Positions 1 through 16,072 of a DNA stretch of 16,072 bases are shown here, in pieces (position 1 is the stretch's first letter; every line of letters begins with the position of its first letter). The notes under the pieces were generated by a model that was not told the origin of the DNA, did no database searches, and saw only the letters and a program-made list of their open reading frames with translations. The position numbers and the translations under genes were made by a program. The stretch lies in assembly GCA_965644295.1 (NCBI GenBank), contig CBFFRP010000610.1:1-16072 (forward strand), written 5' to 3'. This stretch comes from Paraphysomonas bandaiensis. Its lineage: Eukaryota > Protista > Chrysophyceae.

Positions 1-870
1 TTCGTCAGGCACGAACACTTTTTCAGCCTTCGTTGACAACAATTCCATAATCTTAGTTTCACTTTTCATTTCATCGCTGACATGAGTCTCTATCTGCTCA
101 TGATAGTCTTGGAGGGCTTCCTCCCTAGACTTTCCTAAGAATGTCAACGCATCCTTGAATTGAACCGGTAACTCGGTTTCCTCATCCTCTGGGGCAATAG
201 CATCACTCGCTCTTGTCCATGGGTGCACACGGTCATCAGAGTCAACCGTGTCCCCTGCCAGAGATGACAACACATTCGAATTTTCATTATCGGAGACACC
301 CTCGATTTGAGTGTCATGTGCCTCACGCATAACAGCACACATGAAAGGATATAATTTTCCAGTCAGCGCAGGCAACCCCAAAATAATATCATTACTCGTC
401 ATATCAATCACAAAGAATTCACCCGTATATTGATAGGTATGACTCTTTGGATCAGTCAGCACTAAATTTAATCTGACTCCTTCATTGAGATCCTTCACCG
501 TTCTACTATCCGCCAATACCACACGGTGTTTAGCTTTATAAAAACGGCTCGGTTCTAGTTTGTTCCGCAATCTGTCCACCAAATCCCTCGACACATAATT
601 GGCTGAGAGGGCTCCAGTGTCACACAATATTTTTACTAACTCCTCTATTCCAAATTTTCTATCTAAAGTAATCCTTCCTATAGTGTGCGCTGAAGAGAAG
701 CTCTTGGATGAAGGATAGCAGGCATACAGCTTAGCCTGATCCCCGATACAGACATTGGAGGAATTCGCAAACTCATTAAGATCATTAGAATGCACTGAAC
801 ATTCATCATTCTCATCCCGAGTCTTTGAATTGGAATCCTCCTTGTCTGTATCGTCACATCCACCGAACCA
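1..870 (-). CDS. pol: pol N-terminus (aspartic protease), partial, open to the window edge
   Basis: Manual translation of 870->1 has no stops: WFGGCDDTDK...KILCDTGALSANYVSRDLV...FFVIDMTSNDIILGLPAL...KVFVPDE. It is missing from the ORF track because it has no stop inside the window. Confidence 0.8.
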
Positions 871-1635
871 TCAAGGGCGGGAATCACCGAAGTGATCCCT
901 CCTCAAGATGGTCGGTTGTTTGTCCCTCTGCTCCGAACTTCCCGCAGACTTAAGATACGCATCGATCTTGTCCCGCATTTCGGACGCAGAATCCAACAGA
1001 CATTTCGCATTATGATTATAAGGACAGTCTGTTTTGTCGCACTTGCCATACATGATTTTCCTAAGACACCCATACTTATCGGTCTTATTATTCTGAGCAC
1101 CAGTTGGTCTAGAATGCATGGCTGACAGAGACCTATCAGAGTTAAAACGACGCTCCTCATCAACTGCTGCGTCCTTACCCGACATTGGTTTCACATCTGT
1201 CATCATAGCGACTTGTTTATCGTCATGTACCTCCAGATTGCTGGACCGCCAAGTCTCACTCGGAGCATCCCACAAATCATCATCATTGGGTACATACCCA
1301 TCATTATCATCCCACTCATCGTTATAGTTTCCTCCAGACTCATCGTAAGTATCTAGATGTGACACTTGCGAAACCCTTGGTTTAGAATCAACACGACTGT
1401 TCAACGAAGGTTTGTTGGACTGTTGAGAGAATAGTTCCTTTCTCCTCTTAAGATAGTCCTCGTGCTTCTGTTGAAACATCGTAGTCGACTCCATAGGTAA
1501 CTGTCGGTACGCGATGGTTACTTGATAATGATCCAAGAGTACAGCCGAATACTCTTTGAAAAATTCGCTCATAGAGTCAAATTTATTAGTCGACATGCAC
1601 CCCAACACATACTTAACATAGGTCTTACGACCTAT
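871..1635 (-). CDS. gag: gag C-terminal part with CCCH zinc finger (5'-truncated)
   Basis: ORF 871..1641, whose ATG (1639-1641) lies inside the transposon TIR and is not the native start. It has a low-complexity acidic linker, then C-x8-C-x4-C-x3-H (CLRKIMYGKCDKTDCPYNH, 1012-1068), and sits directly upstream of and in frame with the protease. Confidence 0.7.
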   Translation of the reverse strand: MGRKTYVKYVLGCMSTNKFDSMSEFFKEYSAVLLDHYQVTIAYRQLPMESTTMFQQKHEDYLKRRKELFSQQSNKPSLNSRVDSKPRVSQVSHLDTYDESGGNYNDEWDDNDGYVPNDDDLWDAPSETWRSSNLEVHDDKQVAMMTDVKPMSGKDAAVDEERRFNSDRSLSAMHSRPTGAQNNKTDKYGCLRKIMYGKCDKTDCPYNHNAKCLLDSASEMRDKIDAYLKSAGSSEQRDKQPTILRRDHFGDSRP

Positions 1636-1679
1636 GGTCATTTTCTGTTACAAGGGTAAGCATTTTTTTGGTAAGCATT
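1636..1679 (+). repeat. Left terminal inverted repeat
   Basis: GGTCATTTTCTGTTACAAGGGTAAGCATTTTTTTGGTAAGCATT is the reverse complement of 5279-5322 with one mismatch (1668 vs 5290). Confidence 0.95.
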
Positions 1680-1850
1680 CCTTACCAAAAAACGCCGAAA
1701 ATCAATTTCTGTTTACCCTGGTAAGCATTTTCCGGGTAAGTTTTTGAAAATGCTTACCAAAATGCTTACCCTGGAGAGAGAGTGGGGGGGTAAAATTTGG
1801 AATCCTTACCAGGTAGATTTTTTGTCGGGGTAAGGATTTTGGGAAGCATA
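1654..1850. repeat. Left subterminal array of GGTAAG(C/G)ATTTT motifs in both orientations
   Basis: About 10 copies, e.g. near 1655, 1670, 1720, 1735 and 1829 (forward) and 1676-1686, 1747-1758, 1759-1770 and 1801-1810 (reverse). 1705-1731 is a degenerate internal copy of the TIR. Confidence 0.85.
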
Positions 1851-1908
1851 AAAACCTCTAGATGAACATAATATATCCATAGTACATTAATCACATTTTA
1901 TTGATAAC

Positions 1909-3174
1909 ATGAGTGATAGTGAGTCAAGTCAGTGCAGTTTAGACTTCTTGCCTGATGTGGATACATCTTCCACGCAACCCACAAAGAAATATAAGCATCA
2001 GCACCCAGATCCTGTCGACGACACTCTCGTTGAATGCGAACCTGAGGATGAAATGGAATGGTGCGCAAGCGTCTTGTCCTCTCATCGAAGCACGCCTGCT
2101 CAGAAGAAGGATATATATCTCATGATATTCAATTTTGCGTGCTGTAAGACCTTCGAATACCTCGCACAGGAGGTGAAGAGACTACATGCGAAGGAGCGGT
2201 ACTTAATTCTGGACAATGAATTGAGAAATTTCTTCGTTACATACCCTAAAAAGCAGGAGGCCCGTGAGACCATTCTAAAATCATTTCCTGAGCATGCATG
2301 GCCGGAAGGTTTCTTGGAATTTGTGAGTGATTATCTCAATAAGTCAGTGACTAAGGAGTTCACAAATAGCAACACTTGGACAGCGGGACTAAGTGAGGAG
2401 GAGCTCAGACAGGTATACACGGGGCATTTGATTGAATACCAAGTGAAGACTGTAGCTGCACCTGTTAATAATGCCTTGAATCCGCTATGGCAGCCCTTAC
2501 CTAGCGGTGTGCAAGATAGCACCCCTCTACGTCATTATGTACGCCGCAAGTTATGGCATAAGCACTGCCTCGACCTTTCGAAATCTTATCTAAAAGTCAA
2601 ACTTGGGCAAAAGCCGAAAAAGGCGGAGACGCGTTTGGTACTTACTGAAGAGTACACTAAGGAAGATGCACTGGAGGAGATTTATCTGAAACGAATGCAT
2701 AATATGACGTTGGAGTGGAGACCGAAGTGCTGGCTGACCTTTATATTCATGGGCAGACCAGCAGGCGATAGGATGAGCTACCTATTCTCCTCGGGCTCAC
2801 CGTCAAAAGCCATGCCGTATGGAATATCACCTTCTGAAGCCGCTCTTAGTATTGGTGGTAGGGAAGCAAGGAGACATCTACATGAGAGTGTTGGAAGAGG
2901 TTTCGGAAAGCGCAATCCGAGGAAGATGAGACCTCGACCTACATCTCCGGATACTTTCAGTGCCACTACTGATGAGGTGACAATGTTGAAGCATATTGAG
3001 GCCTGCCTTAAGGACGAGATCAAACTTGCTCATGAACTTGGCGCTACTGAGGAGTCTATTACGGAACTGAAGGTAAAGCTGAGTGCAACGTTGAAGGAAT
3101 CGAGAGAGTTCATGGAACAATGTCTTCGGAAAAAGAATGCTATGAATAGTAATCACATTACTACACCTACTTAA
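1909..3174 (+). CDS. Transposon ORF2, 421 aa, putative DNA-binding/accessory partner of the transposase
   Basis: Intact ORF inside the TIRs, convergent with the transposase as in two-gene PIF/Harbinger elements. It has an acidic N-terminus, basic patches and a coiled-coil-like C-terminus. No Myb/SANT or YqaJ motif was recognised by eye. Confidence 0.75.
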   Translation: MSDSESSQCSLDFLPDVDTSSTQPTKKYKHQHPDPVDDTLVECEPEDEMEWCASVLSSHRSTPAQKKDIYLMIFNFACCKTFEYLAQEVKRLHAKERYLILDNELRNFFVTYPKKQEARETILKSFPEHAWPEGFLEFVSDYLNKSVTKEFTNSNTWTAGLSEEELRQVYTGHLIEYQVKTVAAPVNNALNPLWQPLPSGVQDSTPLRHYVRRKLWHKHCLDLSKSYLKVKLGQKPKKAETRLVLTEEYTKEDALEEIYLKRMHNMTLEWRPKCWLTFIFMGRPAGDRMSYLFSSGSPSKAMPYGISPSEAALSIGGREARRHLHESVGRGFGKRNPRKMRPRPTSPDTFSATTDEVTMLKHIEACLKDEIKLAHELGATEESITELKVKLSATLKESREFMEQCLRKKNAMNSNHITTPT

Positions 3175-3301
3175 TTGATTACTGTAATATTATATACAAA
3201 ATAGCAGTAACAATTAATTAATACTATTTCATCCTACATCCTACATGTACTTGAAGAGATAATTTCAATCGAAATGAATCGAACTTAATTATTTACATTA
3301 A

Positions 3302-5110
3302 TTACCAATTCTGGTTCCACAATATCTCAGTGTGAGCAGGAATATCTACGCTTGCTACCAATTTACAGGTATGTAGACAGTCGTCATAAACCAGCACGCA
3401 ATTCGGTGCTGCTTGAGAAGCATGACTTGAGTTGTTGGCTAAGGAAGCCTTGCAATTACCAGAAAAGTTGTTATCCGTGCAGTCTATATATACATTCTCC
3501 TTGCACCTAAAAATATACCTACTTTGTCCGGCATTCTTTTTTTCGACGTACTCTTCATAATTAATCGTTTCGCCGTGGAACTCTGCTACTACATCGCCTT
3601 TGATAAATGACATCCACGAAAACAGACCTCGTCCTGTAGAACGTTCACACTGCTGTGTCTCCGAGTCAAACACCAACAAAGCAGACTGCTTAGTGTAAAG
3701 ACTATGGAAAACCTCCTTAGTCAACCTATGTTGTATTTTAGTCAGTGCGAAGGCATTCTTCTGCCACCCTTCAAATCTGTTGGGCCAATACACTTGACCC
3801 ATTTTGAACTGCGTGTTAAAAGATGTCACTAGCAAATCTCGTAGCACATCGTGGTCATATTCATTGTCCGGAATAATGACAATTGCATCCGAATCATCCG
3901 TAGGGGTAGGCAGGAATGGAATGGTGTTTTCTTCTTCCACTTCTTGTCGTACATATCTCAGTGCATTCATAATTTCCTCTTCAGGAGTATCTGGATGTAA
4001 ATTCGCCCAGTCAACGTTCTCTTCCCACAATTTCCACTCTGCATGATAGGAGGAATCGTATTCCAGTATTATGTTGTGAAGCATACACGCACACTTGAAT
4101 GCCGACTCAATTATAAAGAAGTCATGACACTCAATCATACCAAGTAGATATCTGAATCGATTTTTCAAAATCGCATTGACACATTCAACATCTTTACGGA
4201 TAGACTCAAAAAACTCTGCCCATCTCACTTGATGCATGCTCCATCCCTTGTGTTTGGGGTCCATCATGCAGCCTATTCTTAGGAACCCTCCGTCACACAT
4301 AACCCAAGCTCCTTTTACTGAAATTAAGTTCCCGTCGTTGTCATACAAAGAATATAATACGTCCTGAACTGCACCTTGCATAATTTCAACCATTTCAGGT
4401 ACACCCTTGACCATTAGTTTGTCGTTGCAAGCCCCAAAGAAAGCATCGCTACAAATATTTATTCGGCGCTTGTGATCAACGCCTATTAAGAACGCTAACG
4501 TCGGTCTTCCTTCCTTACCGGTACAGTAATTACCCCATACGAATGGACATTTGTTCCAAAAGACATGCGTACCATCCACTGAGATGAAGCAACCATTCAT
4601 TCCCAGTACTTTGTAGACATCCATCTGCATACGTAAGGCCTCACCAGTTGGTATATACACAAAATCATCGTAAAAGTGATGTACAAACCCAATAACAAAT
4701 GTCTTGAAAATTGTGTGGCAAGTCGTTTGTCCTATACTGCTTAGCTCCGACATAGTATCCGTATCATGGGCTCTAGCCAAAATTCGCAGTGCTACCAGTA
4801 CTCTAAATTTGACAGGAATTGCTGGGGGGAATCGTCTTAGATTAAAGACATTCTTAACTTCGCAAAGTTGAACGATATACTCGAATATAGGATACGGAGT
4901 TCTAAAACGTAGTCGAAACTTAGAACCTAGAAACGTTCTGGGGTCCTTTGTTTCCGGATTCCGAAGCATAAGGCCCCAGGAACTATCTTCGAGATCGGCG
5001 GCAGAGATCTTCTTCTTTCTCTTGTTGGGGTTAAATATTGAATCGGGCTCCGAGTCACAATCATGTGTTAAAGCGTCCACTAAGCTCTCTGTATCAGAAT
5101 ATTCAAACAT
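3302..5110 (-). CDS. Harbinger-like DDE transposase fused to a C-terminal SET-like domain, 602 aa
   Basis: NLS-like NKRKKK; FRLRFR...VALRILA...IGQTTCHTIF HTH region; catalytic SVDGTH (D179), CDGGF (D273) and RKDVEC (E309), giving DD35E; LKNRF and CMLHN follow. The C-terminus (~3302-3700) has GRGLF, GDVVAEFHGE, YIF..IDC, ASLANNS..PNC and VASVDIPAHTEILWN, the SET motif order. Confidence 0.9.
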   Translation of the reverse strand: MFEYSDTESLVDALTHDCDSEPDSIFNPNKRKKKISAADLEDSSWGLMLRNPETKDPRTFLGSKFRLRFRTPYPIFEYIVQLCEVKNVFNLRRFPPAIPVKFRVLVALRILARAHDTDTMSELSSIGQTTCHTIFKTFVIGFVHHFYDDFVYIPTGEALRMQMDVYKVLGMNGCFISVDGTHVFWNKCPFVWGNYCTGKEGRPTLAFLIGVDHKRRINICSDAFFGACNDKLMVKGVPEMVEIMQGAVQDVLYSLYDNDGNLISVKGAWVMCDGGFLRIGCMMDPKHKGWSMHQVRWAEFFESIRKDVECVNAILKNRFRYLLGMIECHDFFIIESAFKCACMLHNIILEYDSSYHAEWKLWEENVDWANLHPDTPEEEIMNALRYVRQEVEEENTIPFLPTPTDDSDAIVIIPDNEYDHDVLRDLLVTSFNTQFKMGQVYWPNRFEGWQKNAFALTKIQHRLTKEVFHSLYTKQSALLVFDSETQQCERSTGRGLFSWMSFIKGDVVAEFHGETINYEEYVEKKNAGQSRYIFRCKENVYIDCTDNNFSGNCKASLANNSSHASQAAPNCVLVYDDCLHTCKLVASVDIPAHTEILWNQNW

Positions 5111-5184
5111 CTTGAATACAGATACGTTTTAAGTAATGATGATGTGATGTGCATATGTTATGTGTGGAGTCTTATATGGGCATC

Positions 5185-5304
5185 AAAAATCCTTACCCGA
5201 AAATCCTTACCACGGAACTGAAATTGAAATTTTGCAGTTTTGGTGGAGGGGAGGGTTAGGATTTTAGGGGTAAGCAAAAATGCTTACCACAAAAATGCTT
5301 ACCC
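5185..5304. repeat. Right subterminal GGTAAG(C/G)ATTTT motif array
   Basis: AAAATCCTTACC at ~5186 and ~5200, GGTTAGGATTTT at ~5254, GGTAAGCA at ~5269, and AAAATGCTTACC twice in the TIR region. Confidence 0.85.
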
Positions 5305-5322
5305 TTGTAACAGAAAATGACC
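5279..5322 (-). repeat. Right terminal inverted repeat
   Basis: AATGCTTACCACAAAAATGCTTACCCTTGTAACAGAAAATGACC, the reverse complement of 1636-1679. Confidence 0.95.
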
Positions 5323-6180
5323 ATACATACATACATACATACATACATACATACATACATACATACATACATACATACATACATACATACATACATACAT
5401 ACATACATACATACATACATACATACATACATACATACATACATACATACATACATACATACATACATACATACATACATACATACATACATACATACAT
5501 ACATACATACATACATACATACATACATACATACATACATACATACATACATACATAACATTCATACATACATACATACATACATACATACATACATACA
5601 TACATACATACATACATACATACATACATACATACATACATACATACATACATACATACATACATACATACATACATACATACATACATACATACATACA
5701 TACATACATACATACATACATACATACATACATACATACATACATACATACATACATACATACATACATACATACATACATACATACATACATACATACA
5801 TACATACATACATACATAACATTCATACATACATACATACATACATACATACATACATACATACATACATACATACATACATACATACATACATACATAC
5901 ATACATACATACATACATACATACATACATACATACATACATACATACATACATACATACATACATACATACATACATACATACATACATACATACATAC
6001 ATACATACATACATACATACATACATACATACATACATACATACATACATACATACATACATACATACATACATACATACATACATACATACATACATAC
6101 ATACATACATACATACATACATACATACATACATACATACATACATACATACATACATACATACATACATACGTACATAC
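5322..6180. repeat. (CATA)n microsatellite, ~210 units
   Basis: Perfect blocks at 5322-5557, 5563-5818 and 5824-6171, separated by identical ACATT interruptions; ends CGTA CATA C. Confidence 0.99.
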
Positions 6181-6314
6181 ACATCCTTTTTTGTATCTGT
6201 TACATTCAGGCATCTGTTGCGTCAGTGTGCTGATAGTCTGACGATCCAGCGGCTGTTATCAAGTTGTATTAATATTCAGTGAGTGTGTGGGCTGTATCAT
6301 TGCGCATATTATAT

Positions 6315-7998
6315 ATGGGTAATTTCGGTGAAGATGTCACACTATCAGCAGGAGGCTGCTCTGCGGCTGGAAGCTACTACACAGATGATATCAACCTCAG
6401 TGACACTGACAGGTGTGAGAATGTTTTTTGCAGAGAATTAGTTTGATATGTATATTTGTAAGGGCCCATGATACTGAGAGCTTCATCAGACACGAAGGCC
6501 GCACCTGGTATCAAGATAAATTACACGAATTGGAAAATGAGCTCTGCCCACCTGGTAGATTTTAGTTGTCGTTAATGCAGGATGTTGTCATTTACGATAT
6601 GTTTAGGAGTTCATGCAGAGTTCAGAGATCTCGGATTGATTGAAACGAAAGTTAATATGATGGAATCAGGAAAGTGGGAAGATTTTGTTGCCAATCAATC
6701 TCGCAAGGGTTTTGTGGAAAAGTTACGCGGCAGTCGTGATCAGTCATCACAGGCGTTCACTCGTTACGACGACGGAGACGTTGACTGTATTTACCAAACG
6801 CGGCCAACGTACACTCGCTGCAGACCTGGTCGATTTAGACCGCATATTAATCTTTCGCATGCGAAACAGCCCAAACCCTTACAGCAGCCCACTAGATGCC
6901 AGGAAAACACACAGCCTTGCAAGCATCCAGGTTATAAGAATCGAGTAGCTGGCCCTACCACAACTTGTCCAAAAGAAATATTTTCTACTCCTTCTCCACC
7001 AATATTTGGCACAATCAAGTGTCTAAAAGAAGGCTCAAACACACATCGCAGCCCAAATATACGACCGAGCACCTCATCCGGACCACGAAGTAATAGTGCA
7101 AGATACATTAGACCCGCTGAACGTCCATCCTCAGCTAGTTCAACCATGAGAGGCAGCTTCCTGACTCAACGCCACATGGGTATTCCTATTTCTACTGCAC
7201 CGAAGCACACATCCCATGCTCGAAGTGGATATGAGAGATACCTGAAAGGTACACTGCTGCATAATCACTGGAGAGATGAAGACCTTATGACTGGAAATGG
7301 TACTGCAAATGTGGTTTCATGATATCACGAACGAATGTACATAATGGGTTTCATAGGAAAGATTTGCTTCCACCCTTTATCGTTTGATGTGCTGGAAACA
7401 CTCTCATTCGGACCTGCCAATAAAGACTATGATAAAATAGGGTCGAATGTAAGTTTTCATTTTTTGTCTTCACCGTTATTATACGTATACACAGAAGCCC
7501 ATGCCTTCTGAGCGGCGGAGTTTAGTTGCAAAAATATATTTATGCCTTCAAAATCAGAGCAAGAACACACAAGTTGTGGTTCAAGACATTCTTAAGTTCT
7601 ATGATGCGGCCAAGCATCCTGCTGTGACATCAGGCCGCGTATCTGCAAATGAACTTCTTCTTAGTCTTCTAGCTGATCTCCTTAATCTGAATGACAAATC
7701 TGAATGTGTTTTTTACAATTCATGTGCTGATTCCTTTCCTGCACATATTCTTGAAGCGGAAGTTTCCGAGGATGATGTCATTCGGCACTACTCATGTGTA
7801 TCTGCCGCCACGAATTCAGACGAATATTTCAAGAAACTCTTGTTTTCTACGTGGCATAAAGTGTGGCCTCTCAAAGAATCCATGTGTAATGGCTATGTAA
7901 AAAGAATTGACACAGTACCCTTCGAGCGAATTATGAACAGTCAGCACGTACCGTCGTACGATTGGGGAGTAAAGAAAACTACCAGGATCATTGTTTGA
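6315..7998 (+). CDS. Spliced host gene with a C-terminal calcyphosin-like (degenerate EF-hand) domain
   Basis: Frame-consistent model with exons 6315-6412, 6463-6554, 6607-7299, 7357-7448 and 7495-7998 (GT-AG introns of 50, 52, 57 and 46 bp; possible extra in-frame intron 7706-7756). The last exon matches the calcyphosin pattern: RRSLVAKIY..L, DILKFYDAAKHPAVTSGR, VSEDDVIRHYSCVSAATNSDEYFKKLLFSTW. Confidence 0.65.
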
Positions 7999-8799
7999 GC
8001 GACACTGTGACCGTATATTGTGTGAGAGAAGCATTCGCAATTGCATTCGAACACTGAAGGCTGTTTTGGTATTGCGTGTTGTTTTTTGCATACGGATTGC
8101 CATGTTATTTCACAGAGGATAGAGTATCAGAAGTGCCAAGAATTAGGACGTTGCCATCTACGAAGTTTAAAATGAAAATAGAAATGTTATTTTGTGTTCA
8201 CAGTTGCAATAATCTGAGGTGAAATCTGTGTAGCTGCTTCCTAAACTACACCCCAGTATTCCGCTTGTCTGTAAGCAACTAAAAGATGTATTTTAAGGTA
8301 TATGAATTATGGCCGTTATTCGAAGAATACAGTAGCAGAAAACAGTGTTATATGAAATACAGATAAGACATGAATTATGTTAGTGAAACTGAAATATATT
8401 GATTCTACAAAATCGTAACTTTCTAAGGTGTGTTAAAATTCATTGGTAGTAGAGGCCGCTATAATGATTTAATGAGAGATGCTGATCACAATTTCAATGA
8501 ATTGAGAGAGTGTGCTGCAACAAGTTGTATCCGAAAGTGACATTGAGTTGATAGACATTAGAGCGACATAAATCAAGCGGGAACATTTAAATCGTAACAT
8601 TTATCGTTCATCATCATTTACTAAATTTATATTTAGCTAAAACTCATTCGTAGATTCTCACCACAACCAATAAATTTCAGTTTGTCGTTTGTCTGAACTA
8701 TCTCATAGCATAATATTTTTTATTTTTAAATTTCAATTAATACATTAATACTGTCTCTGACTACTGTATTATTCAAGCATTCAAGGGGATATATTATTC

Positions 8800-8910
8800 A
8801 ACCTACTAGTCAATTTGGTGGAATTTCCTAGTCATTCCATTTTCGGTGTAAAAACCTAGTCAAAGCCATAAATGACTCAACCTAGCCAATTATAGTATTA
8901 AACCTAGTCG
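8800..8910 (+). repeat. Five spaced copies of an AACCTAGTCA-like motif
   Basis: CTAG cores at 8806, 8828, 8856, 8882 and 8904 with unrelated intervening sequence. Confidence 0.6.
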
Positions 8911-9460
8911 TTCTTATATCCATTGATTACACATTGCGACTGTCTAAGATACGTGCACAAACCACACAACATATTGATGGCTCGTAGAGCATCACAACAA
9001 ACATAACAATTCATTCATATCTACATATCTACATAACAGTGTATGTGTATGTATATGCAGCATATCTGTATAGCTTATTAGTGTACGATGGGTCTCTTAT
9101 CAGTGTTATGAGGAAGAGGAGTGGTCAGTGTAGCTGTGCTGTGGACATACCCCCATGAATATACGTAGACAGACACCTGGAGATCGCTTACCTTCCTTCA
9201 GCGACTTGCTTGTTGAATGAGCGACTGCTTTGACTTCCAGGAGGGCATGAATACCCCATGTTTCTAGACCGATTAAGAAAAAAGAGGGGTTTTCATGTCA
9301 AAGTCTGTGTATTCGTAAAAACAACATCACTGAAATGGACTGCCTTTCCAGGAGCAGATCAAACGATGAGGAGTCCGTCGTACAGTGAAGCCCTTTAATC
9401 TCTCTGCCATGGGATGGATCACTGGCAGTCTCCCTCAATAGTCTCTTGATGCTCCCATTA

Positions 9461-9519
9461 TGACCTGTACACTACAGTGGTTGTGGCCTCTACACTGCAG
9501 TGGTTGTGACCTCTACACC
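9461..9519. repeat. 23-bp tandem repeat, ~2.5 copies
   Basis: TGACCTGTACACTACAGTGGTTG / TGGCCTCTACACTGCAGTGGTTG / TGACCTCTACACC. Confidence 0.85.
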
Positions 9520-9935
9520 GCTGTTGGCCTTACTGACTATCCGTACATCCCTGGCGAGGCATGTGGGAGACATATGTTGCCCAGTATATATATTTACAAT
9601 CTTGAGAGTGCTGATCATAGTGTTATAGGTACCTCAGTACTACAACTGTCCTCGGTTGTGGGACAATAGCCGCTGTTGGCCTTACTGACTATATGCGTAC
9701 ATCACTTGCGAGGTATGTGCGAGACATATTGTCTAGTATATATATTTACAATCTTGTGAGTGCCAATCATTGTGTTATGTACTATCATAGGTACCTCAGT
9801 ACTACTAATGTCCTCGATTGTGGAGCAATAGCCCCCTACTATATTTTTTCTCTGTGCAACTGCGTTTCACTGTTGGCCATAGGTGCACATCACTTGGGAG
9901 GTGTGTACGAGATATATATTGTGTACATATCTTAA
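9518..9935. repeat. Diverged ~152-165 bp tandem repeat: two copies plus a partial third
   Basis: Units start CCGCTGTTGGCCTTACTGACTAT at 9518 and 9670 and share AGTATATATATTTACAATCTTG and ATAGGTACCTCAGTACTAC. A third, decayed copy starts near 9869. Confidence 0.85.
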
Positions 9936-10214
9936 TGTTATCGTCAGGGAACATATTATTGTCAAGCTCCATTATGCCTGAAAGGATTTGCGGATGTCCT
10001 TGCAATAATTCGAGTGCCTGGAGATAAGACAAAATGGGGTTATTTTGGAGGTGTGGTCGAAAGAAATCTTTTTTTTGAAAGAAGTGTGAAATCATGAACT
10101 GCGAGTGCTGATGATGAACTAGCAAGACTGATTCATGAACTGCAACAAGTTTTAACACACATATCACCATATTACACTACAAACCAAAGCATATTATGAG
10201 AACATTGTATTGAT

Positions 10215-10912
10215 ATGATGAGTAGTGATCTGTCTCATTCTGAATCTGGCGAAGAAAGTGGCTTAGACGCTATTGCAACAAAGTTATCTGAGGTGGAACC
10301 TCCATATGTTGCTGAAGGGTCTTGGATTGAAGTCAGTATAAGAGGAATAAGTGACTACAACAAGAAAACAGCATCTCCACATGTTAAAGTGGCTTTGGTA
10401 GACTCATTTTTTGTTAATGTCAAGTGTGTAGTGTACCTGTATGTGATATATGATACTCACATCTATTCTGTTGACAGATACCTCAAAGCGAAATATAGTA
10501 CAGTGGATTTAATTCCTTTGATTTTCCACAAGCTTCGTGGGTTCGCAACGGCAGCAGAAGAAATTGAGGAGACTAAAAGTAGTAGTAGGGCTCTGGAGGC
10601 CCACCCTTGTTTGAAATTAGATTTCTCACGAGGCATTCTCTTCAAGACAACCACTGAGAAATATTGGACAAAAGGTAATATAAAAACTTAATGCAATATG
10701 TTTCCTTTGCGAAGCTAGTAATAATATTATTCCCAGGCTACGAGGTGACTGGCACAAATGAAGAGCTTAAAGTTCCAGTGTTCCGTAGTTCCCGCCAATT
10801 GTTCCCTTTCATTTGCATCGCGGCTGTAAACTTCCCTATGGAATACATCACAGAGTCCGATGTTATTAGGAGGTGGTTGATATTGACAGAAATGTGCGAC
10901 AATATGACGTAA
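10215..10912 (+). CDS. Hypothetical spliced protein-coding gene or pseudogene
   Basis: ORF 10215-10691 can be joined to ORF 10691-10912 by a GTAATA...CCCAG intron (~10675-10736); another short intron is probable, ending GACAG near 10477. No domain recognised. Confidence 0.35.
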
Positions 10913-11282
10913 CCCGGTTTGAAAACCGAAATCACGGCTCGCAGTACAGGTATACCACACAAACACGCAAGTGTAAGAACAATGTATTATTAATGTTGTG
11001 ACTGCTCTAAGCAATAACCTAATGCCCAGTTAATGATTTCCGCCAGAAATCACCACGCAGGTAACACCGCCAGTGCAACAAGATCGTTGGCACCAAGCAC
11101 TTCGGTTAAGCCTAAACAAGTGCATAACACCATAGCATACATGTTACACCCACTCCTACTCCTCAACAACATCACAACCGCAGAGCAAAGTGATACGTTG
11201 GCACGAGGAAGTGCGAGTGACAAGAGTTAACGTTTTTGTTTCCCTGATGGTTGTATTTTTCAGTTTAGTGCATTTGTAGCTC

Positions 11283-13930
11283 TGTAGGATACGGTCTAGA
11301 ATGTACACCGAAATATGAATGAGTACACGAGAACAGTATTATGACTGTAGGGGAGCCTCATAATTTCTTGTCACTAACAATTTCTGTAGTATCTGTCAAG
11401 AGACTTGTTTCTTTGCCTACCTGTAGTGTAGACCGATAAAGAACAACGGGAGTATTGGATCCGTGTCATTGCCAGCCTGTAGTACTGACGACAGTAGAGT
11501 GATCCGTACATTTTTTCTCTACGTGACAAGAAATTAGAATGAGATCCAACAAGAAGTTTCAGAAGCGATTTGAACAAAGGGCTAGGGGTTCGGCGAGCAA
11601 CAGTGCGTCCACGTCTGTGCCAATACTGAGATATGGTGCCAATACCAACTTGGCGACGTTCAAACAGAAGCTAGTGGCCGAGGGAATGGAGAGATATGGA
11701 GACCTGGCAAGGCTAATCGAACTGGACAAGTATTATGAACCGCCGCGTGTAAACCCTGCAGAATATAACTTAAAAAACGACCCCCACGGATTTAACGCTG
11801 AAGATATGAAGGATGCCAGGAAGGCAAGGGCGAAATTGATTAATGAAATGAAGGCGAATCGGACTGCTTTCTATGCATTCATCTACAATCATCTGAGCAA
11901 TGAATCAATTGACGCAATAAAGCTCACACCAGAATACGACAAAATCAACTCGACCAAGGACCCTCTGCTGCTGTGGTTGGCTGTAAAGGAGACTCATAAG
12001 TCAGCAACGAGCTCAAATGTCGAAGCGGTCGTCCGTGCAGAGACTAGGAAGAAATATCAAGACGCAAAACAAGGTCCCTTCGAGAGCATAGTGGGCTACA
12101 AGGAGAGATTCGATTTCCTACTAGATGCGTACAATGACGCCGACAATCCGAGAATGGATGATGAGGACATAGCCATGGATTTCTTTAGGGGATTGGATGA
12201 TGCCCGTTATGGGGAATTCAAGACAAATTATCTAAATGATCTGATGATGGGCACGCAGAAGCCACCTGAGCACGTCAACGATATCTACACTAAAGCATCG
12301 AAGTATCTTACCCCGAGGAGAGGAGCAAAATCGAATGGTGGAGTAGCATTTGTCAGCCAGAAGGAACAATCCACCAAGCAAAGGCGTGCGAGTGAAATGG
12401 ACAGAAAACAGAAGGCCAATGATGACCAGGAGCCGAGACGTCGCGGTAATAGGCCGAGGAAACCCATGGTGTGCTGGGGTTGTGGAGAGCCCGGACACAA
12501 ACTGAGTAATTGTCCCGATAATGTAGAGCCGGAGGAAAAACAGTGCTCGGTCACAACAATGAACGCATATGCATCGAGCGGTGAGCGTTTTGAGTGGTAC
12601 GAGGTGCTTCTAGACAACCAGGCGGACGTATCAGTTGTACACCCGTGGTTGCTGAAGGACGTGAGGCCAGCAAGCAGAAAGTGCACGGTAGCCGGTCTAT
12701 CTGGACACGCCGTAGAACTACCGAACGTGGGAGAGCTGGATTATTTCTTCACATGTAAGACGGCTGAAGACCTACGTGTGAGTGTATTATGCCAGGCCGA
12801 TGTGGAAGATATGTATCCAGTGGCTTATGAACCGGGTGTATCGTACACTGTGTATCTACAAAACAAAGAACTAGTGTTCAGAAGGCGGAACAAAATGTAT
12901 GTAGCTGACATGAGAGACTGGGCAGAAGGAAATGTTAATGTTACAACAACAAGCATGGAAGAACAAAAATACACAAGAGGCGAAGTTGCTAGGGCGAGAG
13001 AAGCTCGAGAACTAATACGCAATTCTGGTTTTGACTCAGAACAAGACGCGATAAACCTCGTGAGTGACGGCAACATCACAGGGGTGCAGCTGACTGCAAA
13101 TGATATCAGAAGGTCGTTCGATATATATGGCAAACCGTGTGAGGCTATCAGAGGAAAACACACCAAAAAGAAGGTACGCAGACAGCACGTGGATATTGAA
13201 TTGAAGGCGTCGCAGCAAAAGAGTCAGCGGTTATATACGGACTTATTCTATGTGAGGAAGCAACCTTTCATGATCACATTGTCGGAGCCTCTTGGACTAA
13301 CTTTGGTGGCGGCACTACCGAGTGAGAGAACAGACGATCTTGGACTAGCTCTGCAAGAGCAAGTGAGTCTATTGCGCAGCCATGGATTTACACCGAGGAT
13401 AGCATACCTGGATCCACAGCCGGGATTTCAACCACTTCGAGGAAAGATTACAGGGGTGGAGATAGACATCAGCGGTGCTGGAGATCATATGGATAGGGTC
13501 GATAGCAAGATAAGAAGGCTGAAGGAGATCATAAGAAGTGTGAATGCGGGTCTACCGTGGAAATTGCCTAATGCGAACGTGGAAGACTTAGTGAAATATG
13601 CAAACAGTCGCATGAATCTGAGAAGACCATCGACAAGTCATTCCATCGTCGCCCCACGAGTAGCTTTCACTGGGAGAAAGCCGAACTACAGAAAGGAACT
13701 AGATATGGCATTCGGAGACTACGTGGAGTGCTACAATCCTAAGGTGAGGAGTAATAATGCCGAGCAGGATCGTACGGAGCCATGCATAGCATTGTATCCT
13801 ACTGGCAATGCTAACGGTAGTTGGGTATTCTTCAATATCAAGACACAGAAGAGAATTCGAAGAACTAACTGGGTAAAGATGCGAACAACACAGCTCATAA
13901 TAGACGCAATGAACAATGCAGCAAAGACGT
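11283..13930 (+). mobile_element. Ty1/Copia LTR retrotransposon (CoDi-like), 5' portion, interrupted before RT
   Basis: Domain order gag-CCHC-protease-integrase in one ORF. The left boundary is tentative (TGT...ACA segment 11283-11379). Confidence 0.8.
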
Positions 13931-13935
13931 ATTGA
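11539..13935 (+). CDS. gag-pol: Copia Gag-Pol polyprotein (Gag, CCHC knuckle, protease, integrase), truncated before RT/RNase H
   Basis: QGPFESIVGYKERF in gag; CWGCGEPGHKLSNC (12472-12513); VLLDNQADVSVV protease; integrase YTDLFYV / YLDPQPGF / HMDRVDSKIRRLKE; downstream FGDYVECY and CIALYPTGNANGSWVFF. Integrase directly after protease is the Copia order. Confidence 0.9.
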   Translation: MRSNKKFQKRFEQRARGSASNSASTSVPILRYGANTNLATFKQKLVAEGMERYGDLARLIELDKYYEPPRVNPAEYNLKNDPHGFNAEDMKDARKARAKLINEMKANRTAFYAFIYNHLSNESIDAIKLTPEYDKINSTKDPLLLWLAVKETHKSATSSNVEAVVRAETRKKYQDAKQGPFESIVGYKERFDFLLDAYNDADNPRMDDEDIAMDFFRGLDDARYGEFKTNYLNDLMMGTQKPPEHVNDIYTKASKYLTPRRGAKSNGGVAFVSQKEQSTKQRRASEMDRKQKANDDQEPRRRGNRPRKPMVCWGCGEPGHKLSNCPDNVEPEEKQCSVTTMNAYASSGERFEWYEVLLDNQADVSVVHPWLLKDVRPASRKCTVAGLSGHAVELPNVGELDYFFTCKTAEDLRVSVLCQADVEDMYPVAYEPGVSYTVYLQNKELVFRRRNKMYVADMRDWAEGNVNVTTTSMEEQKYTRGEVARAREARELIRNSGFDSEQDAINLVSDGNITGVQLTANDIRRSFDIYGKPCEAIRGKHTKKKVRRQHVDIELKASQQKSQRLYTDLFYVRKQPFMITLSEPLGLTLVAALPSERTDDLGLALQEQVSLLRSHGFTPRIAYLDPQPGFQPLRGKITGVEIDISGAGDHMDRVDSKIRRLKEIIRSVNAGLPWKLPNANVEDLVKYANSRMNLRRPSTSHSIVAPRVAFTGRKPNYRKELDMAFGDYVECYNPKVRSNNAEQDRTEPCIALYPTGNANGSWVFFNIKTQKRIRRTNWVKMRTTQLIIDAMNNAAKTY

Positions 13936-16072
13936 ATGTCTTTTTATTTAGCAATAGGCGTTAAAAACCCGTTCCGATATAGCGGCTAGTTGAATACTAG
14001 TCTACTAGTTAGACCTCTACCCATAACTAATCAGCGCAAATTCTATTATCCTACTATTTAACGCTACAGAAGCTGCTTGTGCGTCGCCGCAAGCACCAAG
14101 GTGCAACCACTTCCGTTCTTGATGTTGTGTGTGAGTTCGCCCTGCTCGTGTGTCTGAGGACTCACTGGCGCGTGTTGTCCGGGGGTCTCCCCTTGGGATA
14201 CGGTTCCGCCTGACTCTGAGGTACCGGGTTCTGTATTAAGGTCCTGAGTGTACCGAGCACTAGATGTGTGGACTGAGAGGTTGATGGTGTGGTGGAATGT
14301 GGCGGTGTCGCCATGCACCGTTTGGGCGTTGGGCATAGGTGGAGTTGCCGGAGACGTCGTCGCCTTTGTCTAGGGCCTGTTGGTTTCATATGGTCCGTTG
14401 CTATGGTCCTCTGTGTATGGTTGGTAGGGTTCAGAGGTATGGTGGGCGGTGTTCCAGTCTCGGTTCGTCTGTGGATTCCTAGTAATCTTAGCACCCTTGG
14501 GCGTTTCCGTTTCTGTCTGTGGTTTGGACTCAGCCGCGGTAGTAGCCTTGGGGGGCCTTTCCGTAGGGTCACGTATCTTCTTCCGCGATCTTGGATCATG
14601 AGCTTTGCTGCAGCGAACAGCGGTAGCAGTAATTTGATGATCGCTGATTCGATGCTGCGCAGTCCTTGGGATGTCAGTGATTCATGGATGTGATCTCCAA
14701 AAACCATTTCAAGCTGTGTCATTGTGATGGTACCCGTCCAGAATCTCTCCACCTGTGGCACGGAAGGGTTCCAGGCCCTGCTGGAGAGTCGCTGGAGTAC
14801 AGTGGTGGTCCATTGGGGTAATTCCGGATTCCTCATTTCTTCTAGGAGCGCGTTTTTGTGGCTGTGAAATGCAGACTCCCTTATCTGCGTTATGGTGTCG
14901 TTTGTGCAGTCGAGACACATATGCTTGAGTGAGTCTAGTCTAAATCCGCAGTCAGAGCATACGGCTTTAGCCATGTCGAGTCCGTGTTTGGTTTTCGCCC
15001 GGTTTCTTCCTATGCTGAAGGATTTGTCCCATGTCAGTGCTGCATTTAGTACTCTTTGGCGCAGGTGGGAGCTCACTTTGTCCTTTGATGGTCCACCATC
15101 TGCTTGCGCCAGTTTGCGCGGAAGTAGTGCTCCGCTGTCTTTCCAGTATCCAGGAGCCCGGTCGGGATTGTGACCGTAGCGTTGGTCTCGGAGAGCTGTA
15201 TATGCCTCCAGCGTCCGTTGATTACGGAGGGATTGGAAATCCGTGAGTAGGGGGCTAGTGCGATACGGCCGTCGTTCCCCAGTTAGGCGCCAGTGCCATA
15301 AACCCTCGGTGAGTATTCTCTCGATGGCTTGGTCCACTTCCATGTTACAGACAGTGTAATTTTGTCGTCCGAGTAGTCGATCTACCTCAAGCCAGTCCCC
15401 TCCTGCTACTGCGTCGGCAATGTAAATTCCTTTGTCTTCATATGTCCATTCAGACTCATCAGAGGTGCGTCGTTCGGGGTGTGATCGGACCCAGGCTACT
15501 GTCCTTGTGCAATCGTTATTTGCTGCAATGCTTTCGAGCAGTACACCTTTGGCACGATGCCCCAGTGCCCGACGTCTGGCGGAGAGTGCTTCGTGTGTGC
15601 GTATGCAGACGGCCTTACAGTCCGTATTTATCGGTATGTGTGATGGGAGTCGCGCAGACAGTATAAGCGCCATTGCTGCTCCCATGAGCTCGTATGCATA
15701 CGGGCCAAGTCCAGGCACGTCGCTGAAGGGTGTCTCTAATCGCAGTATTTTTGTTGTACCGTTCTTCCATTCATCCTCCGGGGGGAGCCAGACTGCCGCC
15801 GCTCCTCCATAATGTGCCCATCTTGTACGTGGGTTTACACGCGTAATGCGGCGCGGGGATAGGGCTGTAGGCGTGTATGAGCCGTCGGTGAAGATTGCCT
15901 GATATGTATCCGCGGTTACATCATCCAGTTCTAATGTGCGGATAATGTTGGTCAGGGTGTTGGTATCTTGAGGTTCCGGACTGTCGGGTTGTTGGAGAGT
16001 AAGGCCAACCTCCGTACCCCATTCCCGCAGACTTAAGGCAAAGTGGTGGTAGTTTGGGTACGGCGCGATAGT
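13931..16072 (-). mobile_element. Non-LTR retrotransposon (LINE), 3' portion, antisense to and interrupting the Copia element
   Basis: RNase H plus C-terminal CCHC ORF, then a ~220-bp 3' UTR with AATAAA (minus strand, ~13944-13949) ending where the Copia ORF breaks. The exact junction base is uncertain. Confidence 0.75.
14162..16072 (-). CDS. LINE polyprotein C-terminus: RNase H and zinc knuckle (partial, open to the window edge)
   Basis: The frame is open from 16072. RNase H motifs IFTDGS, AYELMG, INTDCKA, WVRSHPE and GIYIADAVA (~15410-15896); CSDCGFRLDSLKHMCLDC (C-x2-C-x8-H-x4-C, 14906-14959); basic low-complexity tail. Confidence 0.82.
   Translation of the reverse strand, partial: TIAPYPNYHHFALSLREWGTEVGLTLQQPDSPEPQDTNTLTNIIRTLELDDVTADTYQAIFTDGSYTPTALSPRRITRVNPRTRWAHYGGAAAVWLPPEDEWKNGTTKILRLETPFSDVPGLGPYAYELMGAAMALILSARLPSHIPINTDCKAVCIRTHEALSARRRALGHRAKGVLLESIAANNDCTRTVAWVRSHPERRTSDESEWTYEDKGIYIADAVAGGDWLEVDRLLGRQNYTVCNMEVDQAIERILTEGLWHWRLTGERRPYRTSPLLTDFQSLRNQRTLEAYTALRDQRYGHNPDRAPGYWKDSGALLPRKLAQADGGPSKDKVSSHLRQRVLNAALTWDKSFSIGRNRAKTKHGLDMAKAVCSDCGFRLDSLKHMCLDCTNDTITQIRESAFHSHKNALLEEMRNPELPQWTTTVLQRLSSRAWNPSVPQVERFWTGTITMTQLEMVFGDHIHESLTSQGLRSIESAIIKLLLPLFAAAKLMIQDRGRRYVTLRKGPPRLLPRLSPNHRQKRKRPRVLRLLGIHRRTETGTPPTIPLNPTNHTQRTIATDHMKPTGPRQRRRRLRQLHLCPTPKRCMATPPHSTTPSTSQSTHLVLGTLRTLIQNPVPQSQAEPYPKGRPPDNTRQ

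Follow-up and report, generated by a model that had tools for sequence, protein, structure and literature searches.

A Harbinger-type element of Paraphysomonas bandaiensis encodes a transposase fused in frame to a SET-fold domain

We analyzed a 16,072-nucleotide stretch of the genome of the chrysophyte protist Paraphysomonas bandaiensis (contig CBFFRP010000610.1 of GenBank assembly GCA_965644295.1, positions 1 to 16,072 of the forward strand), referred to here as the window, in which a 3687-bp element occupies positions 1636 to 5322. The element carries two open reading frames (ORFs) that converge tail to tail between terminal inverted repeats (TIRs). The larger ORF, on the minus strand at positions 3302 to 5110, runs uninterrupted for 602 amino acids plus a stop codon. 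A first-pass annotation, made from the sequence letters, had described this frame as a Harbinger-type transposase with a C-terminal SET domain without stating the strand, and our translation confirmed the frame. The second frame, ORF2 (positions 1909 to 3174, plus strand, 421 amino acids), matches no Pfam family. On the evidence given below, we consider it likely that the element is a structurally complete, potentially autonomous PIF/Harbinger DNA transposon of the SET-carrying kind named HarbingerS in Repbase. The in-frame transposase-SET fusion inside this TIR-bounded, two-gene element is real.

Three Pfam families matched the 602-residue polypeptide, all above their curated cutoffs: Plant_tran at residues 153 to 352 (E value of 3e-15), DDE_Tnp_4 at residues 178 to 346 (5e-10), and SET at residues 493 to 599 (3.7e-7; 30.9 bits against a cutoff of 22.4). 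The proposed presence of DDE_Tnp_4 and SET on one polypeptide was therefore upheld. The DDE catalytic core (residues 151 to 385; positions 3956 to 4660 of the minus strand, as are all parts of this gene) contains the triad D179, D273, and E309 with DD35E spacing, which is invariant across a 13-member family alignment. It is followed by a poorly conserved acidic linker (residues 386 to 418; 3857 to 3955), by a conserved helical segment of the form DHxxLxxLLxxSFxxQxxxGQVYWP... (residues 419 to 485; 3656 to 3856; helices H6-22, H34-39, and H42-56 of the structural model), and by the SET-fold domain (residues 486 to 602; 3305 to 3655). The core, the acidic linker, and the SET motifs named in the first-pass annotation are all present in the translation, the motifs in the order GRGLF, GDVVAEFHGE, YIF..IDC, ASLANNS..PNC, and ASVDIPAHTEILWN.

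The C terminus is confidently predicted to fold as a SET domain, as the first-pass annotation had supposed. A profile built from the C-terminal modules of the 13 family members, compared with the PDB, recovered EZH2, MLL1-4, SETD8, NSD1-3, ASH1L, and SETD7 with E values from 7e-8 to 1e-3. An AlphaFold2 model of residues 415 to 602 of the window protein had a mean predicted local distance difference test score (pLDDT) of 83.8 and a predicted template modeling (TM) score of 0.76. Foldseek searches with this model returned MLL3, MLL1, SETD8, NSD2, and SET7/9 with a probability of 1.00, the best match being MLL3 (5f6k_E; E value of 1e-8, target TM score of 0.69). A word-based search with the SET region alone (residues 440 to 602) gave no matches, a result that we ascribe to the sensitivity of the tool because the full-length and HMMER searches recovered the family.

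A word-based search identified 12 full-length relatives (584 to 686 amino acids, 32 to 51% identity, 91 to 99% query coverage) that align with the window protein from the N terminus through the end of the SET domain. In an exhaustive HMMER search with the 13-member alignment, about 60 of the 190 retrieved proteins had the C-terminal module, and among the top 150 matches at least 35 of the SET-bearing proteins each represented a cluster at 50% identity. In total, no fewer than 40 such clusters of public proteins have the fusion, nearly all of them from metagenome or sequencing-run assemblies. The ESM Atlas contains a 53-member eukaryotic cluster that was automatically named DDE/Plant_tran/SET. 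Metagenome or sequencing-run assemblies (JGI, ENA, and Logan) are the source of the relatives, apart from one in NCBI assembly GCA_041445565.1. About 46 related transposases form a second class, which stops near profile position 448, just past the conserved helical segment, and lacks a SET domain. We also noted that proteins P0090 to P0175 form a large sister group of Harbinger transposases of about 460 to 510 amino acids that terminate right after the ..GQVYWP.. segment. Because the SET-less sister transposases carry the helical segment and end just past it, this segment belongs to the transposase, and the SET domain is appended to it.

We built a maximum-likelihood tree from the transposase core (profile columns 100 to 440, SET excluded), leaving out P0016, which was too gappy, and rows of uncertain completeness. 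One branch, with a Shimodaira-Hasegawa-like approximate likelihood ratio test (SH-aLRT) support of 86, placed 42 SET-bearing and 6 short rows on one side and 43 short rows on the other. Mapped onto this tree, the SET label changed 7 times compared to a mean of about 30 when labels were shuffled, and none of 500 shuffles gave a number as low. These sequence comparisons are consistent with one old acquisition of the SET domain and later diversification, with the domain lost, or the gene call truncated, in a few cases. The moderate support for the branch between SET-bearing and SET-less proteins and the unrooted state of the tree weaken this reading.

To estimate selection, we applied the Nei-Gojobori method to four close pairs (P0003/4/5 and P0001/2) with 82 to 84% amino acid identity. 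For the SET part, the proportion of nonsynonymous differences (pN) was 0.09 to 0.15 versus 0.47 to 0.66 for synonymous differences (pS), giving dN/dS ratios of 0.09 to 0.18. The ratios were 0.02 to 0.05 for the DDE core and 0.12 to 0.20 for the linker, the highest in the protein, and the pre-SET helices had a pN of 0.045 to 0.07. All of these dN/dS ratios are rough, with synonymous sites close to saturation, although the contrast between pN and pS is still clear. Purifying selection acts on the SET part, which shows no decay in the sister families. The loss or decay of the domain in sister copies that the first-pass annotation had contemplated was not seen in these families, and the full-length relatives align to the SET end.

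The ends of the element agree with the near-perfect TIRs of the first-pass annotation. An inverted repeat of 47 nucleotides, 98% complementary, joins positions 1633 to 1679 and 5279 to 5325. We set the bounds of the element at 1636 and 5322 because all 27 termini of the family in the genome begin at GG, which leaves TIRs proper of 44 nucleotides. The left TIR (1636 to 1679, plus strand) begins GGTCATTTTCTGTTACAAGGGTAAGC..., and the flanking TAT at 1633 to 1635 lengthens the inverted repeat to 47 nucleotides together with the ATA at 5323 to 5325 that flanks the right TIR (5279 to 5322, minus strand) and leads directly into a (CATA)n microsatellite. Inside the TIRs, a left subterminal array (1655 to 1845; repeats I2, I7, D5, and D6) holds GGTAAGC(ATT) motifs in both orientations at 1655, 1670, 1720, 1752, 1764, and other positions, and a right subterminal region (5190 to 5278) holds GGTAAG(C) motifs. 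GGTAAGC motifs in both orientations are restricted to the first approximately 130 and the last approximately 55 nucleotides of the element. These arrays are candidate binding sites for the proteins of the element.

The TIRs and a DDE_Tnp_4/Plant_tran transposase with an intact triad place the element among the Harbinger transposons. It also fits the description of Pangu/Harbinger2 elements, which measure about 3.5 kb, have TIRs that start with GG or AG, and carry two ORFs, of which the second has no known motif; these elements additionally have a 5'-ANT-3' target-site duplication (TSD) (PMC4482050). We ruled out an ANT duplication for this family, as the flanks are TAA/TTA in the relatives and TAT/ATA in the window copy.

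The same layout, a transposase gene converging on an ORF2 homologue, was present on the contigs of six relatives (P0001, P0003, P0004, P0006, P0009, and P0017). Their ORF2 homologues have about 400 to 520 amino acids and 29 to 37% identity. An AlphaFold2 model of the window ORF2 protein (pLDDT of 69.6) was all-alpha, with a confident core at about residues 45 to 285 and a C-terminal helical hairpin. Neither Pfam nor structure searches, in which the domains were not folded separately, gave a Pfam family or a Myb, SANT, or trihelix match for ORF2, and Foldseek against the PDB returned nothing below an E value of 0.5. A wide structure search (VIA) produced only generic helical hairpins for residues 346 to 421, with Z scores up to 9.9, below chance for helical models, and a word search returned a single match, a 99% twin. 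Harbinger transposons usually have a Myb/SANT partner, and ORF2 is a candidate for an accessory protein of a type new to them. In view of the missing Myb/SANT fold, a DNA-binding role for ORF2 is suggested by analogy only, which tells against assigning that role.

Relatives with both ends on the contig have TIRs of 30 to 44 nucleotides with a GG start and element lengths of 3.4 to 3.8 kb, so the fused architecture does occur within TIRs elsewhere, a point that the first-pass annotation had proposed to check. The TIR of element L101 (GGTCATTTCTC...), is similar to that of the window element (GGTCATTTTCTG...). Two elements showed clean duplications, with TAA on both sides of the ends beginning GGGCATTTC.. 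(L093) and GGGCCAATTC.. (L096), and 10 of the 13 readable ends of relatives adjoin TAA or TTA. Judging from these flanks, the TSD of the family is the classic Harbinger TWA and not the Pangu ANT. An identical P0003 protein was encoded by elements with four different left flanks (L088 to L091), and P0001 elements had three different left flanks (L092 to L094); nearly all flanks of both sets adjoin TTA or TAA. Because identical proteins lie at different insertion flanks, we conclude that SET-fused elements transposed recently in their hosts. One pair of P0003 elements on contigs from different samples had reciprocally mismatched flanks, TTA on the left and GAA on the right for L088 and GAA on the left and TTA on the right for L090, which would fit ectopic recombination between two copies.

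We searched the 62.5-Mb assembly of 669 contigs for further copies. The window copy was the only full-length copy. Decayed relatives with stops and 52 to 69% amino acid identity were present on four contigs (C297, C66, C186, and C532), and three solo ends adjoin TTA, TTA, and AAA. A second, P0013-like lineage is represented by three near-identical decayed copies (C149:39084-40268, C324:287666-288772, and C464:38534-39683; loci L038, L039, and L041) that retain the pre-SET helices and pieces of the DDE domain, the latter with a TAG in frame; a stop comes after the helices, and the SET domain is absent. The left 1.1 kb of the element, which comprises the TIR, the subterminal array, and ORF2 in patches, was found in 22 copies that are 86 to 97% identical (C402:36633, C191:35803, C66:330600, C79:149810, C667:41469, and about 17 more; loci L003 to L025 and L061 to L087). 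All 22 share the outside flank ATGGAAAAC-TGA. We considered and rejected the idea that these are many transpositions, as a single shared flank indicates one old insertion amplified within a larger repeat.

Marine metatranscriptome contigs were colinear with the window gene at 99 to 100% identity. One RNA-library contig covered positions 3510 to 3926 with 3 mismatches, containing the linker and the first 40 SET residues, and another covered 3938 to 4172, the end of the DDE core, with no mismatches. RNA-library contigs of another study covered 4401 to 4551 and 4671 to 4821. No joint that removes the SET domain was present in the RNA-library contigs, and one of them spans the linker-SET junction, which answers the concern in the first-pass annotation that transcripts might splice the domain out. 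The window copy is probably transcribed. Two features of these data weigh against that conclusion and against the predicted 3' end of the gene: the contigs are strandless, with DNA carry-over possible, and none of them reaches 3302 to 3425, the region of the unusual 3' end, which is without independent read confirmation. In a contig of run X1, which is labelled with the likely source organism, position 2729 was joined to 3426, skipping 696 nucleotides and removing the 3' ends of both genes. We rejected an intron here, as there is no GT-AG on either strand and the joint has a 2-nucleotide CT microhomology. The gap from 2730 to 3425 looks like that of an internally deleted derivative of the element, absent from this assembly.

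Two observations count against recent movement of the window copy itself: it is the sole full-length copy in the genome, and its flanks, TAT on the left and ATA on the right, extend the inverted repeat rather than forming a direct 3-bp duplication. The adjoining microsatellite may be the reason for the absence of a clean TSD. In the first-pass annotation the element was called recently mobile rather than domesticated, and this holds for the lineage, in which identical proteins occur at three to four insertion sites, and not for the window copy. The same two observations are what would be expected if the gene had been domesticated by the host, as SETMAR was, and sat between old repeat ends. We regard this explanation as very improbable, since the TIRs share 98% identity and their subterminal arrays match, the DDE triad is intact, the partner ORF2 is intact and accompanies the transposase in six other elements as a conserved gene, the relatives have TSDs and several insertion sites for identical copies, and decayed copies and solo ends of the family lie in the same genome. 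Even less credible is the idea that this element alone recently picked up its SET part from a fragment of a host gene, or that the fusion is a chimera of the assembly or the gene call. Several large host SET proteins (on C661, C476, C339, and C463) do weakly match the module, but the best large host SET gene reached an E value of 1e-10, over the SET core, compared to 1.9e-76 for the element. The same colinear architecture occurs at 32 to 51% identity in dozens of independent assemblies, and the junction is crossed by an RNA-library contig, so this explanation is practically refuted.

We aligned the SET domain with SETD8 to compare the catalytic motifs. GRGLF of the window protein corresponds to GRGV, and the GxG is present (G493 and G495). 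AEFHGE corresponds to VEYHGD, with a Phe at the position of the SET8 active-site residue Tyr245, and the best single-sequence structure match was the Y245F mutant of SET8 (3f9z). SLANNS corresponds to RLINHS; the Asn is invariant in the family, and the His of the NH motif is changed to Asn in the window copy. This His is absent in all 13 aligned members, with Ser in nearly all relatives (..ANSP..). TEILWNQN corresponds to EELLYDYG, with a Gln at position 600 in the window copy. A C-terminal Tyr-Gly (W-x-Y-G..H) is present in 12 of the 13 members, and the window copy alone differs, having Gln-Asn in a terminal WNQNW. Alternative frames beyond the stop, which we read by eye, did not restore a Y-G..H tail. 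The word "intact" in the first-pass annotation therefore fits the ORF and the DDE core but does not fully fit the SET part. Judged by the motifs of methyltransferases, the window copy has the SET fold but lacks both the N-H-(S/C) motif and the C-terminal Tyr of E-L-x-x-x-Y.

These motifs bear on whether the module writes a mark or binds one. Several of them speak against a methyltransferase. The family has no NHS-motif His (NS, or NN in the window copy) and has the Phe at the Tyr245 position, only 6 of the 13 members passed the Pfam SET threshold, and the window copy stops 2 residues past its Gln-Asn, missing the 5- to 15-residue tail of the relatives. Active SET/PR enzymes without the His exist, such as PRDM9, which has N-C, and EZH2 Y641F retains activity with an altered product specificity; loss of the C-terminal Tyr usually abolishes the activity of SET enzymes. 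The family-wide changes at the His and Tyr positions do not prove inactivity because PRDM9 and EZH2 Y641F are active. At the level of the family, the module is probably a lysine methyltransferase with an atypical cofactor pocket, a reading suggested by the conservation of the GxG, the Asn, and the C-terminal Tyr while the His was lost. The window copy lacks the C-terminal Tyr-Gly and the residues that follow it in the relatives, so its SET domain is probably impaired in catalysis and could at best serve as a binding module.

It is possible, though we hold this tentatively, that the module is a pseudo-methyltransferase throughout the family, a noncatalytic binder of a histone tail, nucleosome, or protein through which the transposase is held at a chromatin state or host complex, much like the chromodomain of chromoviruses, and writes no mark. 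This would account for the missing NH His in every aligned member, the Phe at the SET8 Tyr245 equivalent, and the 7 of 13 members that fall below the Pfam SET threshold. The frame of the window copy has stayed open despite the missing catalytic Tyr, and strong constraint is equally compatible with binding. Against it, Tyr-Gly, GxG, and Asn are conserved in 12 to 13 of the 13 members at about 30 to 50% identity, as catalysis would demand, and the active His-less enzymes and the active EZH2 mutant mentioned above are examples in which such changes did not abolish activity. The strongest version of the catalytic reading is one that we rate as rather unlikely as a whole. It would make the in-frame fusion an undescribed architecture, apart from HarbingerS with a separate SET gene, in which a still-active transposase brings its own histone-lysine methyltransferase to mark nucleosomes at the excision or insertion site. 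In the mechanism that we consider most likely, the SET domain would be a selected, chromatin-directed module on a cut-and-paste Harbinger transposase.

By analogy with other Harbinger transposons, ORF2 and the N terminus of the transposase would recognize the subterminal motifs, and the DDE core would cut the element and paste it into TWA sites. The SET module, carried along on the transposase, would act on the chromatin of either the donor site or the target site. Such an activity could help the element if it opposed silencing, or if it selected or marked the sites of insertion.

That some Harbinger transposons encode a SET methyltransferase was already known. Such elements are listed in Repbase as HarbingerS (Kojima and Jurka, Repbase Reports 2014;14:2243-2250, as cited in PMC12730594), and that article places the Phytophthora families HarbingerS-9_PI and HarbingerS-1/2/3_PSo near Harbinger2/Pangu. 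The first-pass annotation had named an earlier listing of the architecture in Repbase as grounds for refutation, and such a listing thus exists at least in part; we found no description of a Harbinger transposase fused to a SET domain in the literature searched. Secondary sources describe the SET of HarbingerS as "genes incorporated" or "an accessory gene" (PMC12730594; bioRxiv 10.1101/2025.02.11.637652) and say nothing of a fusion in frame with the transposase, whereas in the window element the two are fused. By the descriptive definition of a Harbinger encoding SET, the window element is HarbingerS-like, a comparison made with descriptions of HarbingerS only. The two share a SET-encoding Harbinger, and in published trees HarbingerS is related to Harbinger2/Pangu, whose TIR start, length, and motif-less second ORF all fit the window element. 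HarbingerS hosts are oomycetes, while the window host is a free-living marine protist and the relatives come almost only from metagenome and sequencing-run assemblies. No TSD was found for HarbingerS-9_PI (Han et al.), in contrast to the TAA/TTA of the relatives of the window element. What may be new here is that the fusion is in frame, that it is widespread in assemblies of metagenomes and sequencing runs, and that its motifs are altered; SET-carrying Harbinger transposons have been known since 2014.

The closest parallel for a SET domain and a DDE/D transposase on one polypeptide is SETMAR (Metnase), which joins a primate SET domain to the Hsmar1 mariner transposase. SETMAR is a host gene that formed when an immobile mariner copy was captured as an exon; its SET domain is N-terminal, and it has no functional TIR pair. 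In the window element the SET domain is C-terminal, the transposase is of the Harbinger type, TIRs and a partner ORF are present, and the relatives are still moving. If the SET domain is a binder, the best functional analogy is the integrase of chromoviruses (Ty3/Gypsy), whose C-terminal chromodomain steers insertion, although there the enzyme is a retrotransposon integrase and the reader a chromodomain.

Other mobile elements also carry chromatin or DNA modifiers. The PHISTA lineage of Harbinger and KDZ/Plavaka (fungi and red algae) carry TET/JBP enzymes with a proposed anti-silencing role (PMC12730594; bioRxiv 10.1101/2025.02.11.637652). Like the window element, these are DNA transposons with an enzyme that acts on epigenetic marks, but the enzyme is a 5-methylcytosine dioxygenase encoded by a separate gene rather than a SET fold fused to the transposase. 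Within the stramenopiles, transposable-element-borne SET domains occur in Phytophthora MuDR families and in Proto-Helentron-Pi (PMC12730594; PMC4067079). The SET of Proto-Helentron-Pi is a separate, Clr4-like ORF of about 153 amino acids with cofactor sites reported as conserved (PMC4067079), in contrast to the window SET, which is fused, is closest by fold to MLL, SETD8, and NSD, and lacks the NH His. We found no functional study of a transposable-element-borne SET domain in the literature.

Transposons that carry chromatin or DNA modifiers are rare, the examples being VANC in VANDAL, TET/JBP in KDZ/Plavaka and PHISTA, and SET in HarbingerS. In no other elements is an action on host silencing as clear. 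The family described here offers a compact, two-gene, 3.7-kb system in which a SET fold is tied physically to the transposase and is old and under selection. It is also a natural, still-mobile counterpart of the domesticated SETMAR fusion. Natural variants with and without the catalytic Tyr, together with the SET-less sisters, allow comparison, and the family is suited to a direct test of histone methylation or binding in target choice or in escape from silencing. The family is abundant in metagenome assemblies, which suggests that it plays a part in the dynamics of protist genomes. If a built-in writer were confirmed, this would be the first still-mobile transposase with its own chromatin-writing activity, and one widespread in marine protists.

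We made several further observations in the genome and the window. Two identical 108-codon open frames at C20:137819-138112 and C199:521530-521823 match profile positions 41 to 135 of the C-terminal module, covering the last helix and the N-terminal half of the SET domain, and lie far from any DDE match. In the window, the (CATA)n microsatellite extends for about 860 bp (5323 to 6180) from the first base past the right TIR, and the left flank of the element is unique sequence. Three window ORFs had no Pfam match at an E value of 0.01: 871 to 1641 (minus strand), which adjoins the left TIR, 11539 to 13935 (plus strand), and 14162 to 15718 (minus strand). Positions 9458 to 9833 contain a 23-nucleotide tandem triplet and a duplicated unit of about 152 to 162 nucleotides (repeat families D2 to D4 and D7).

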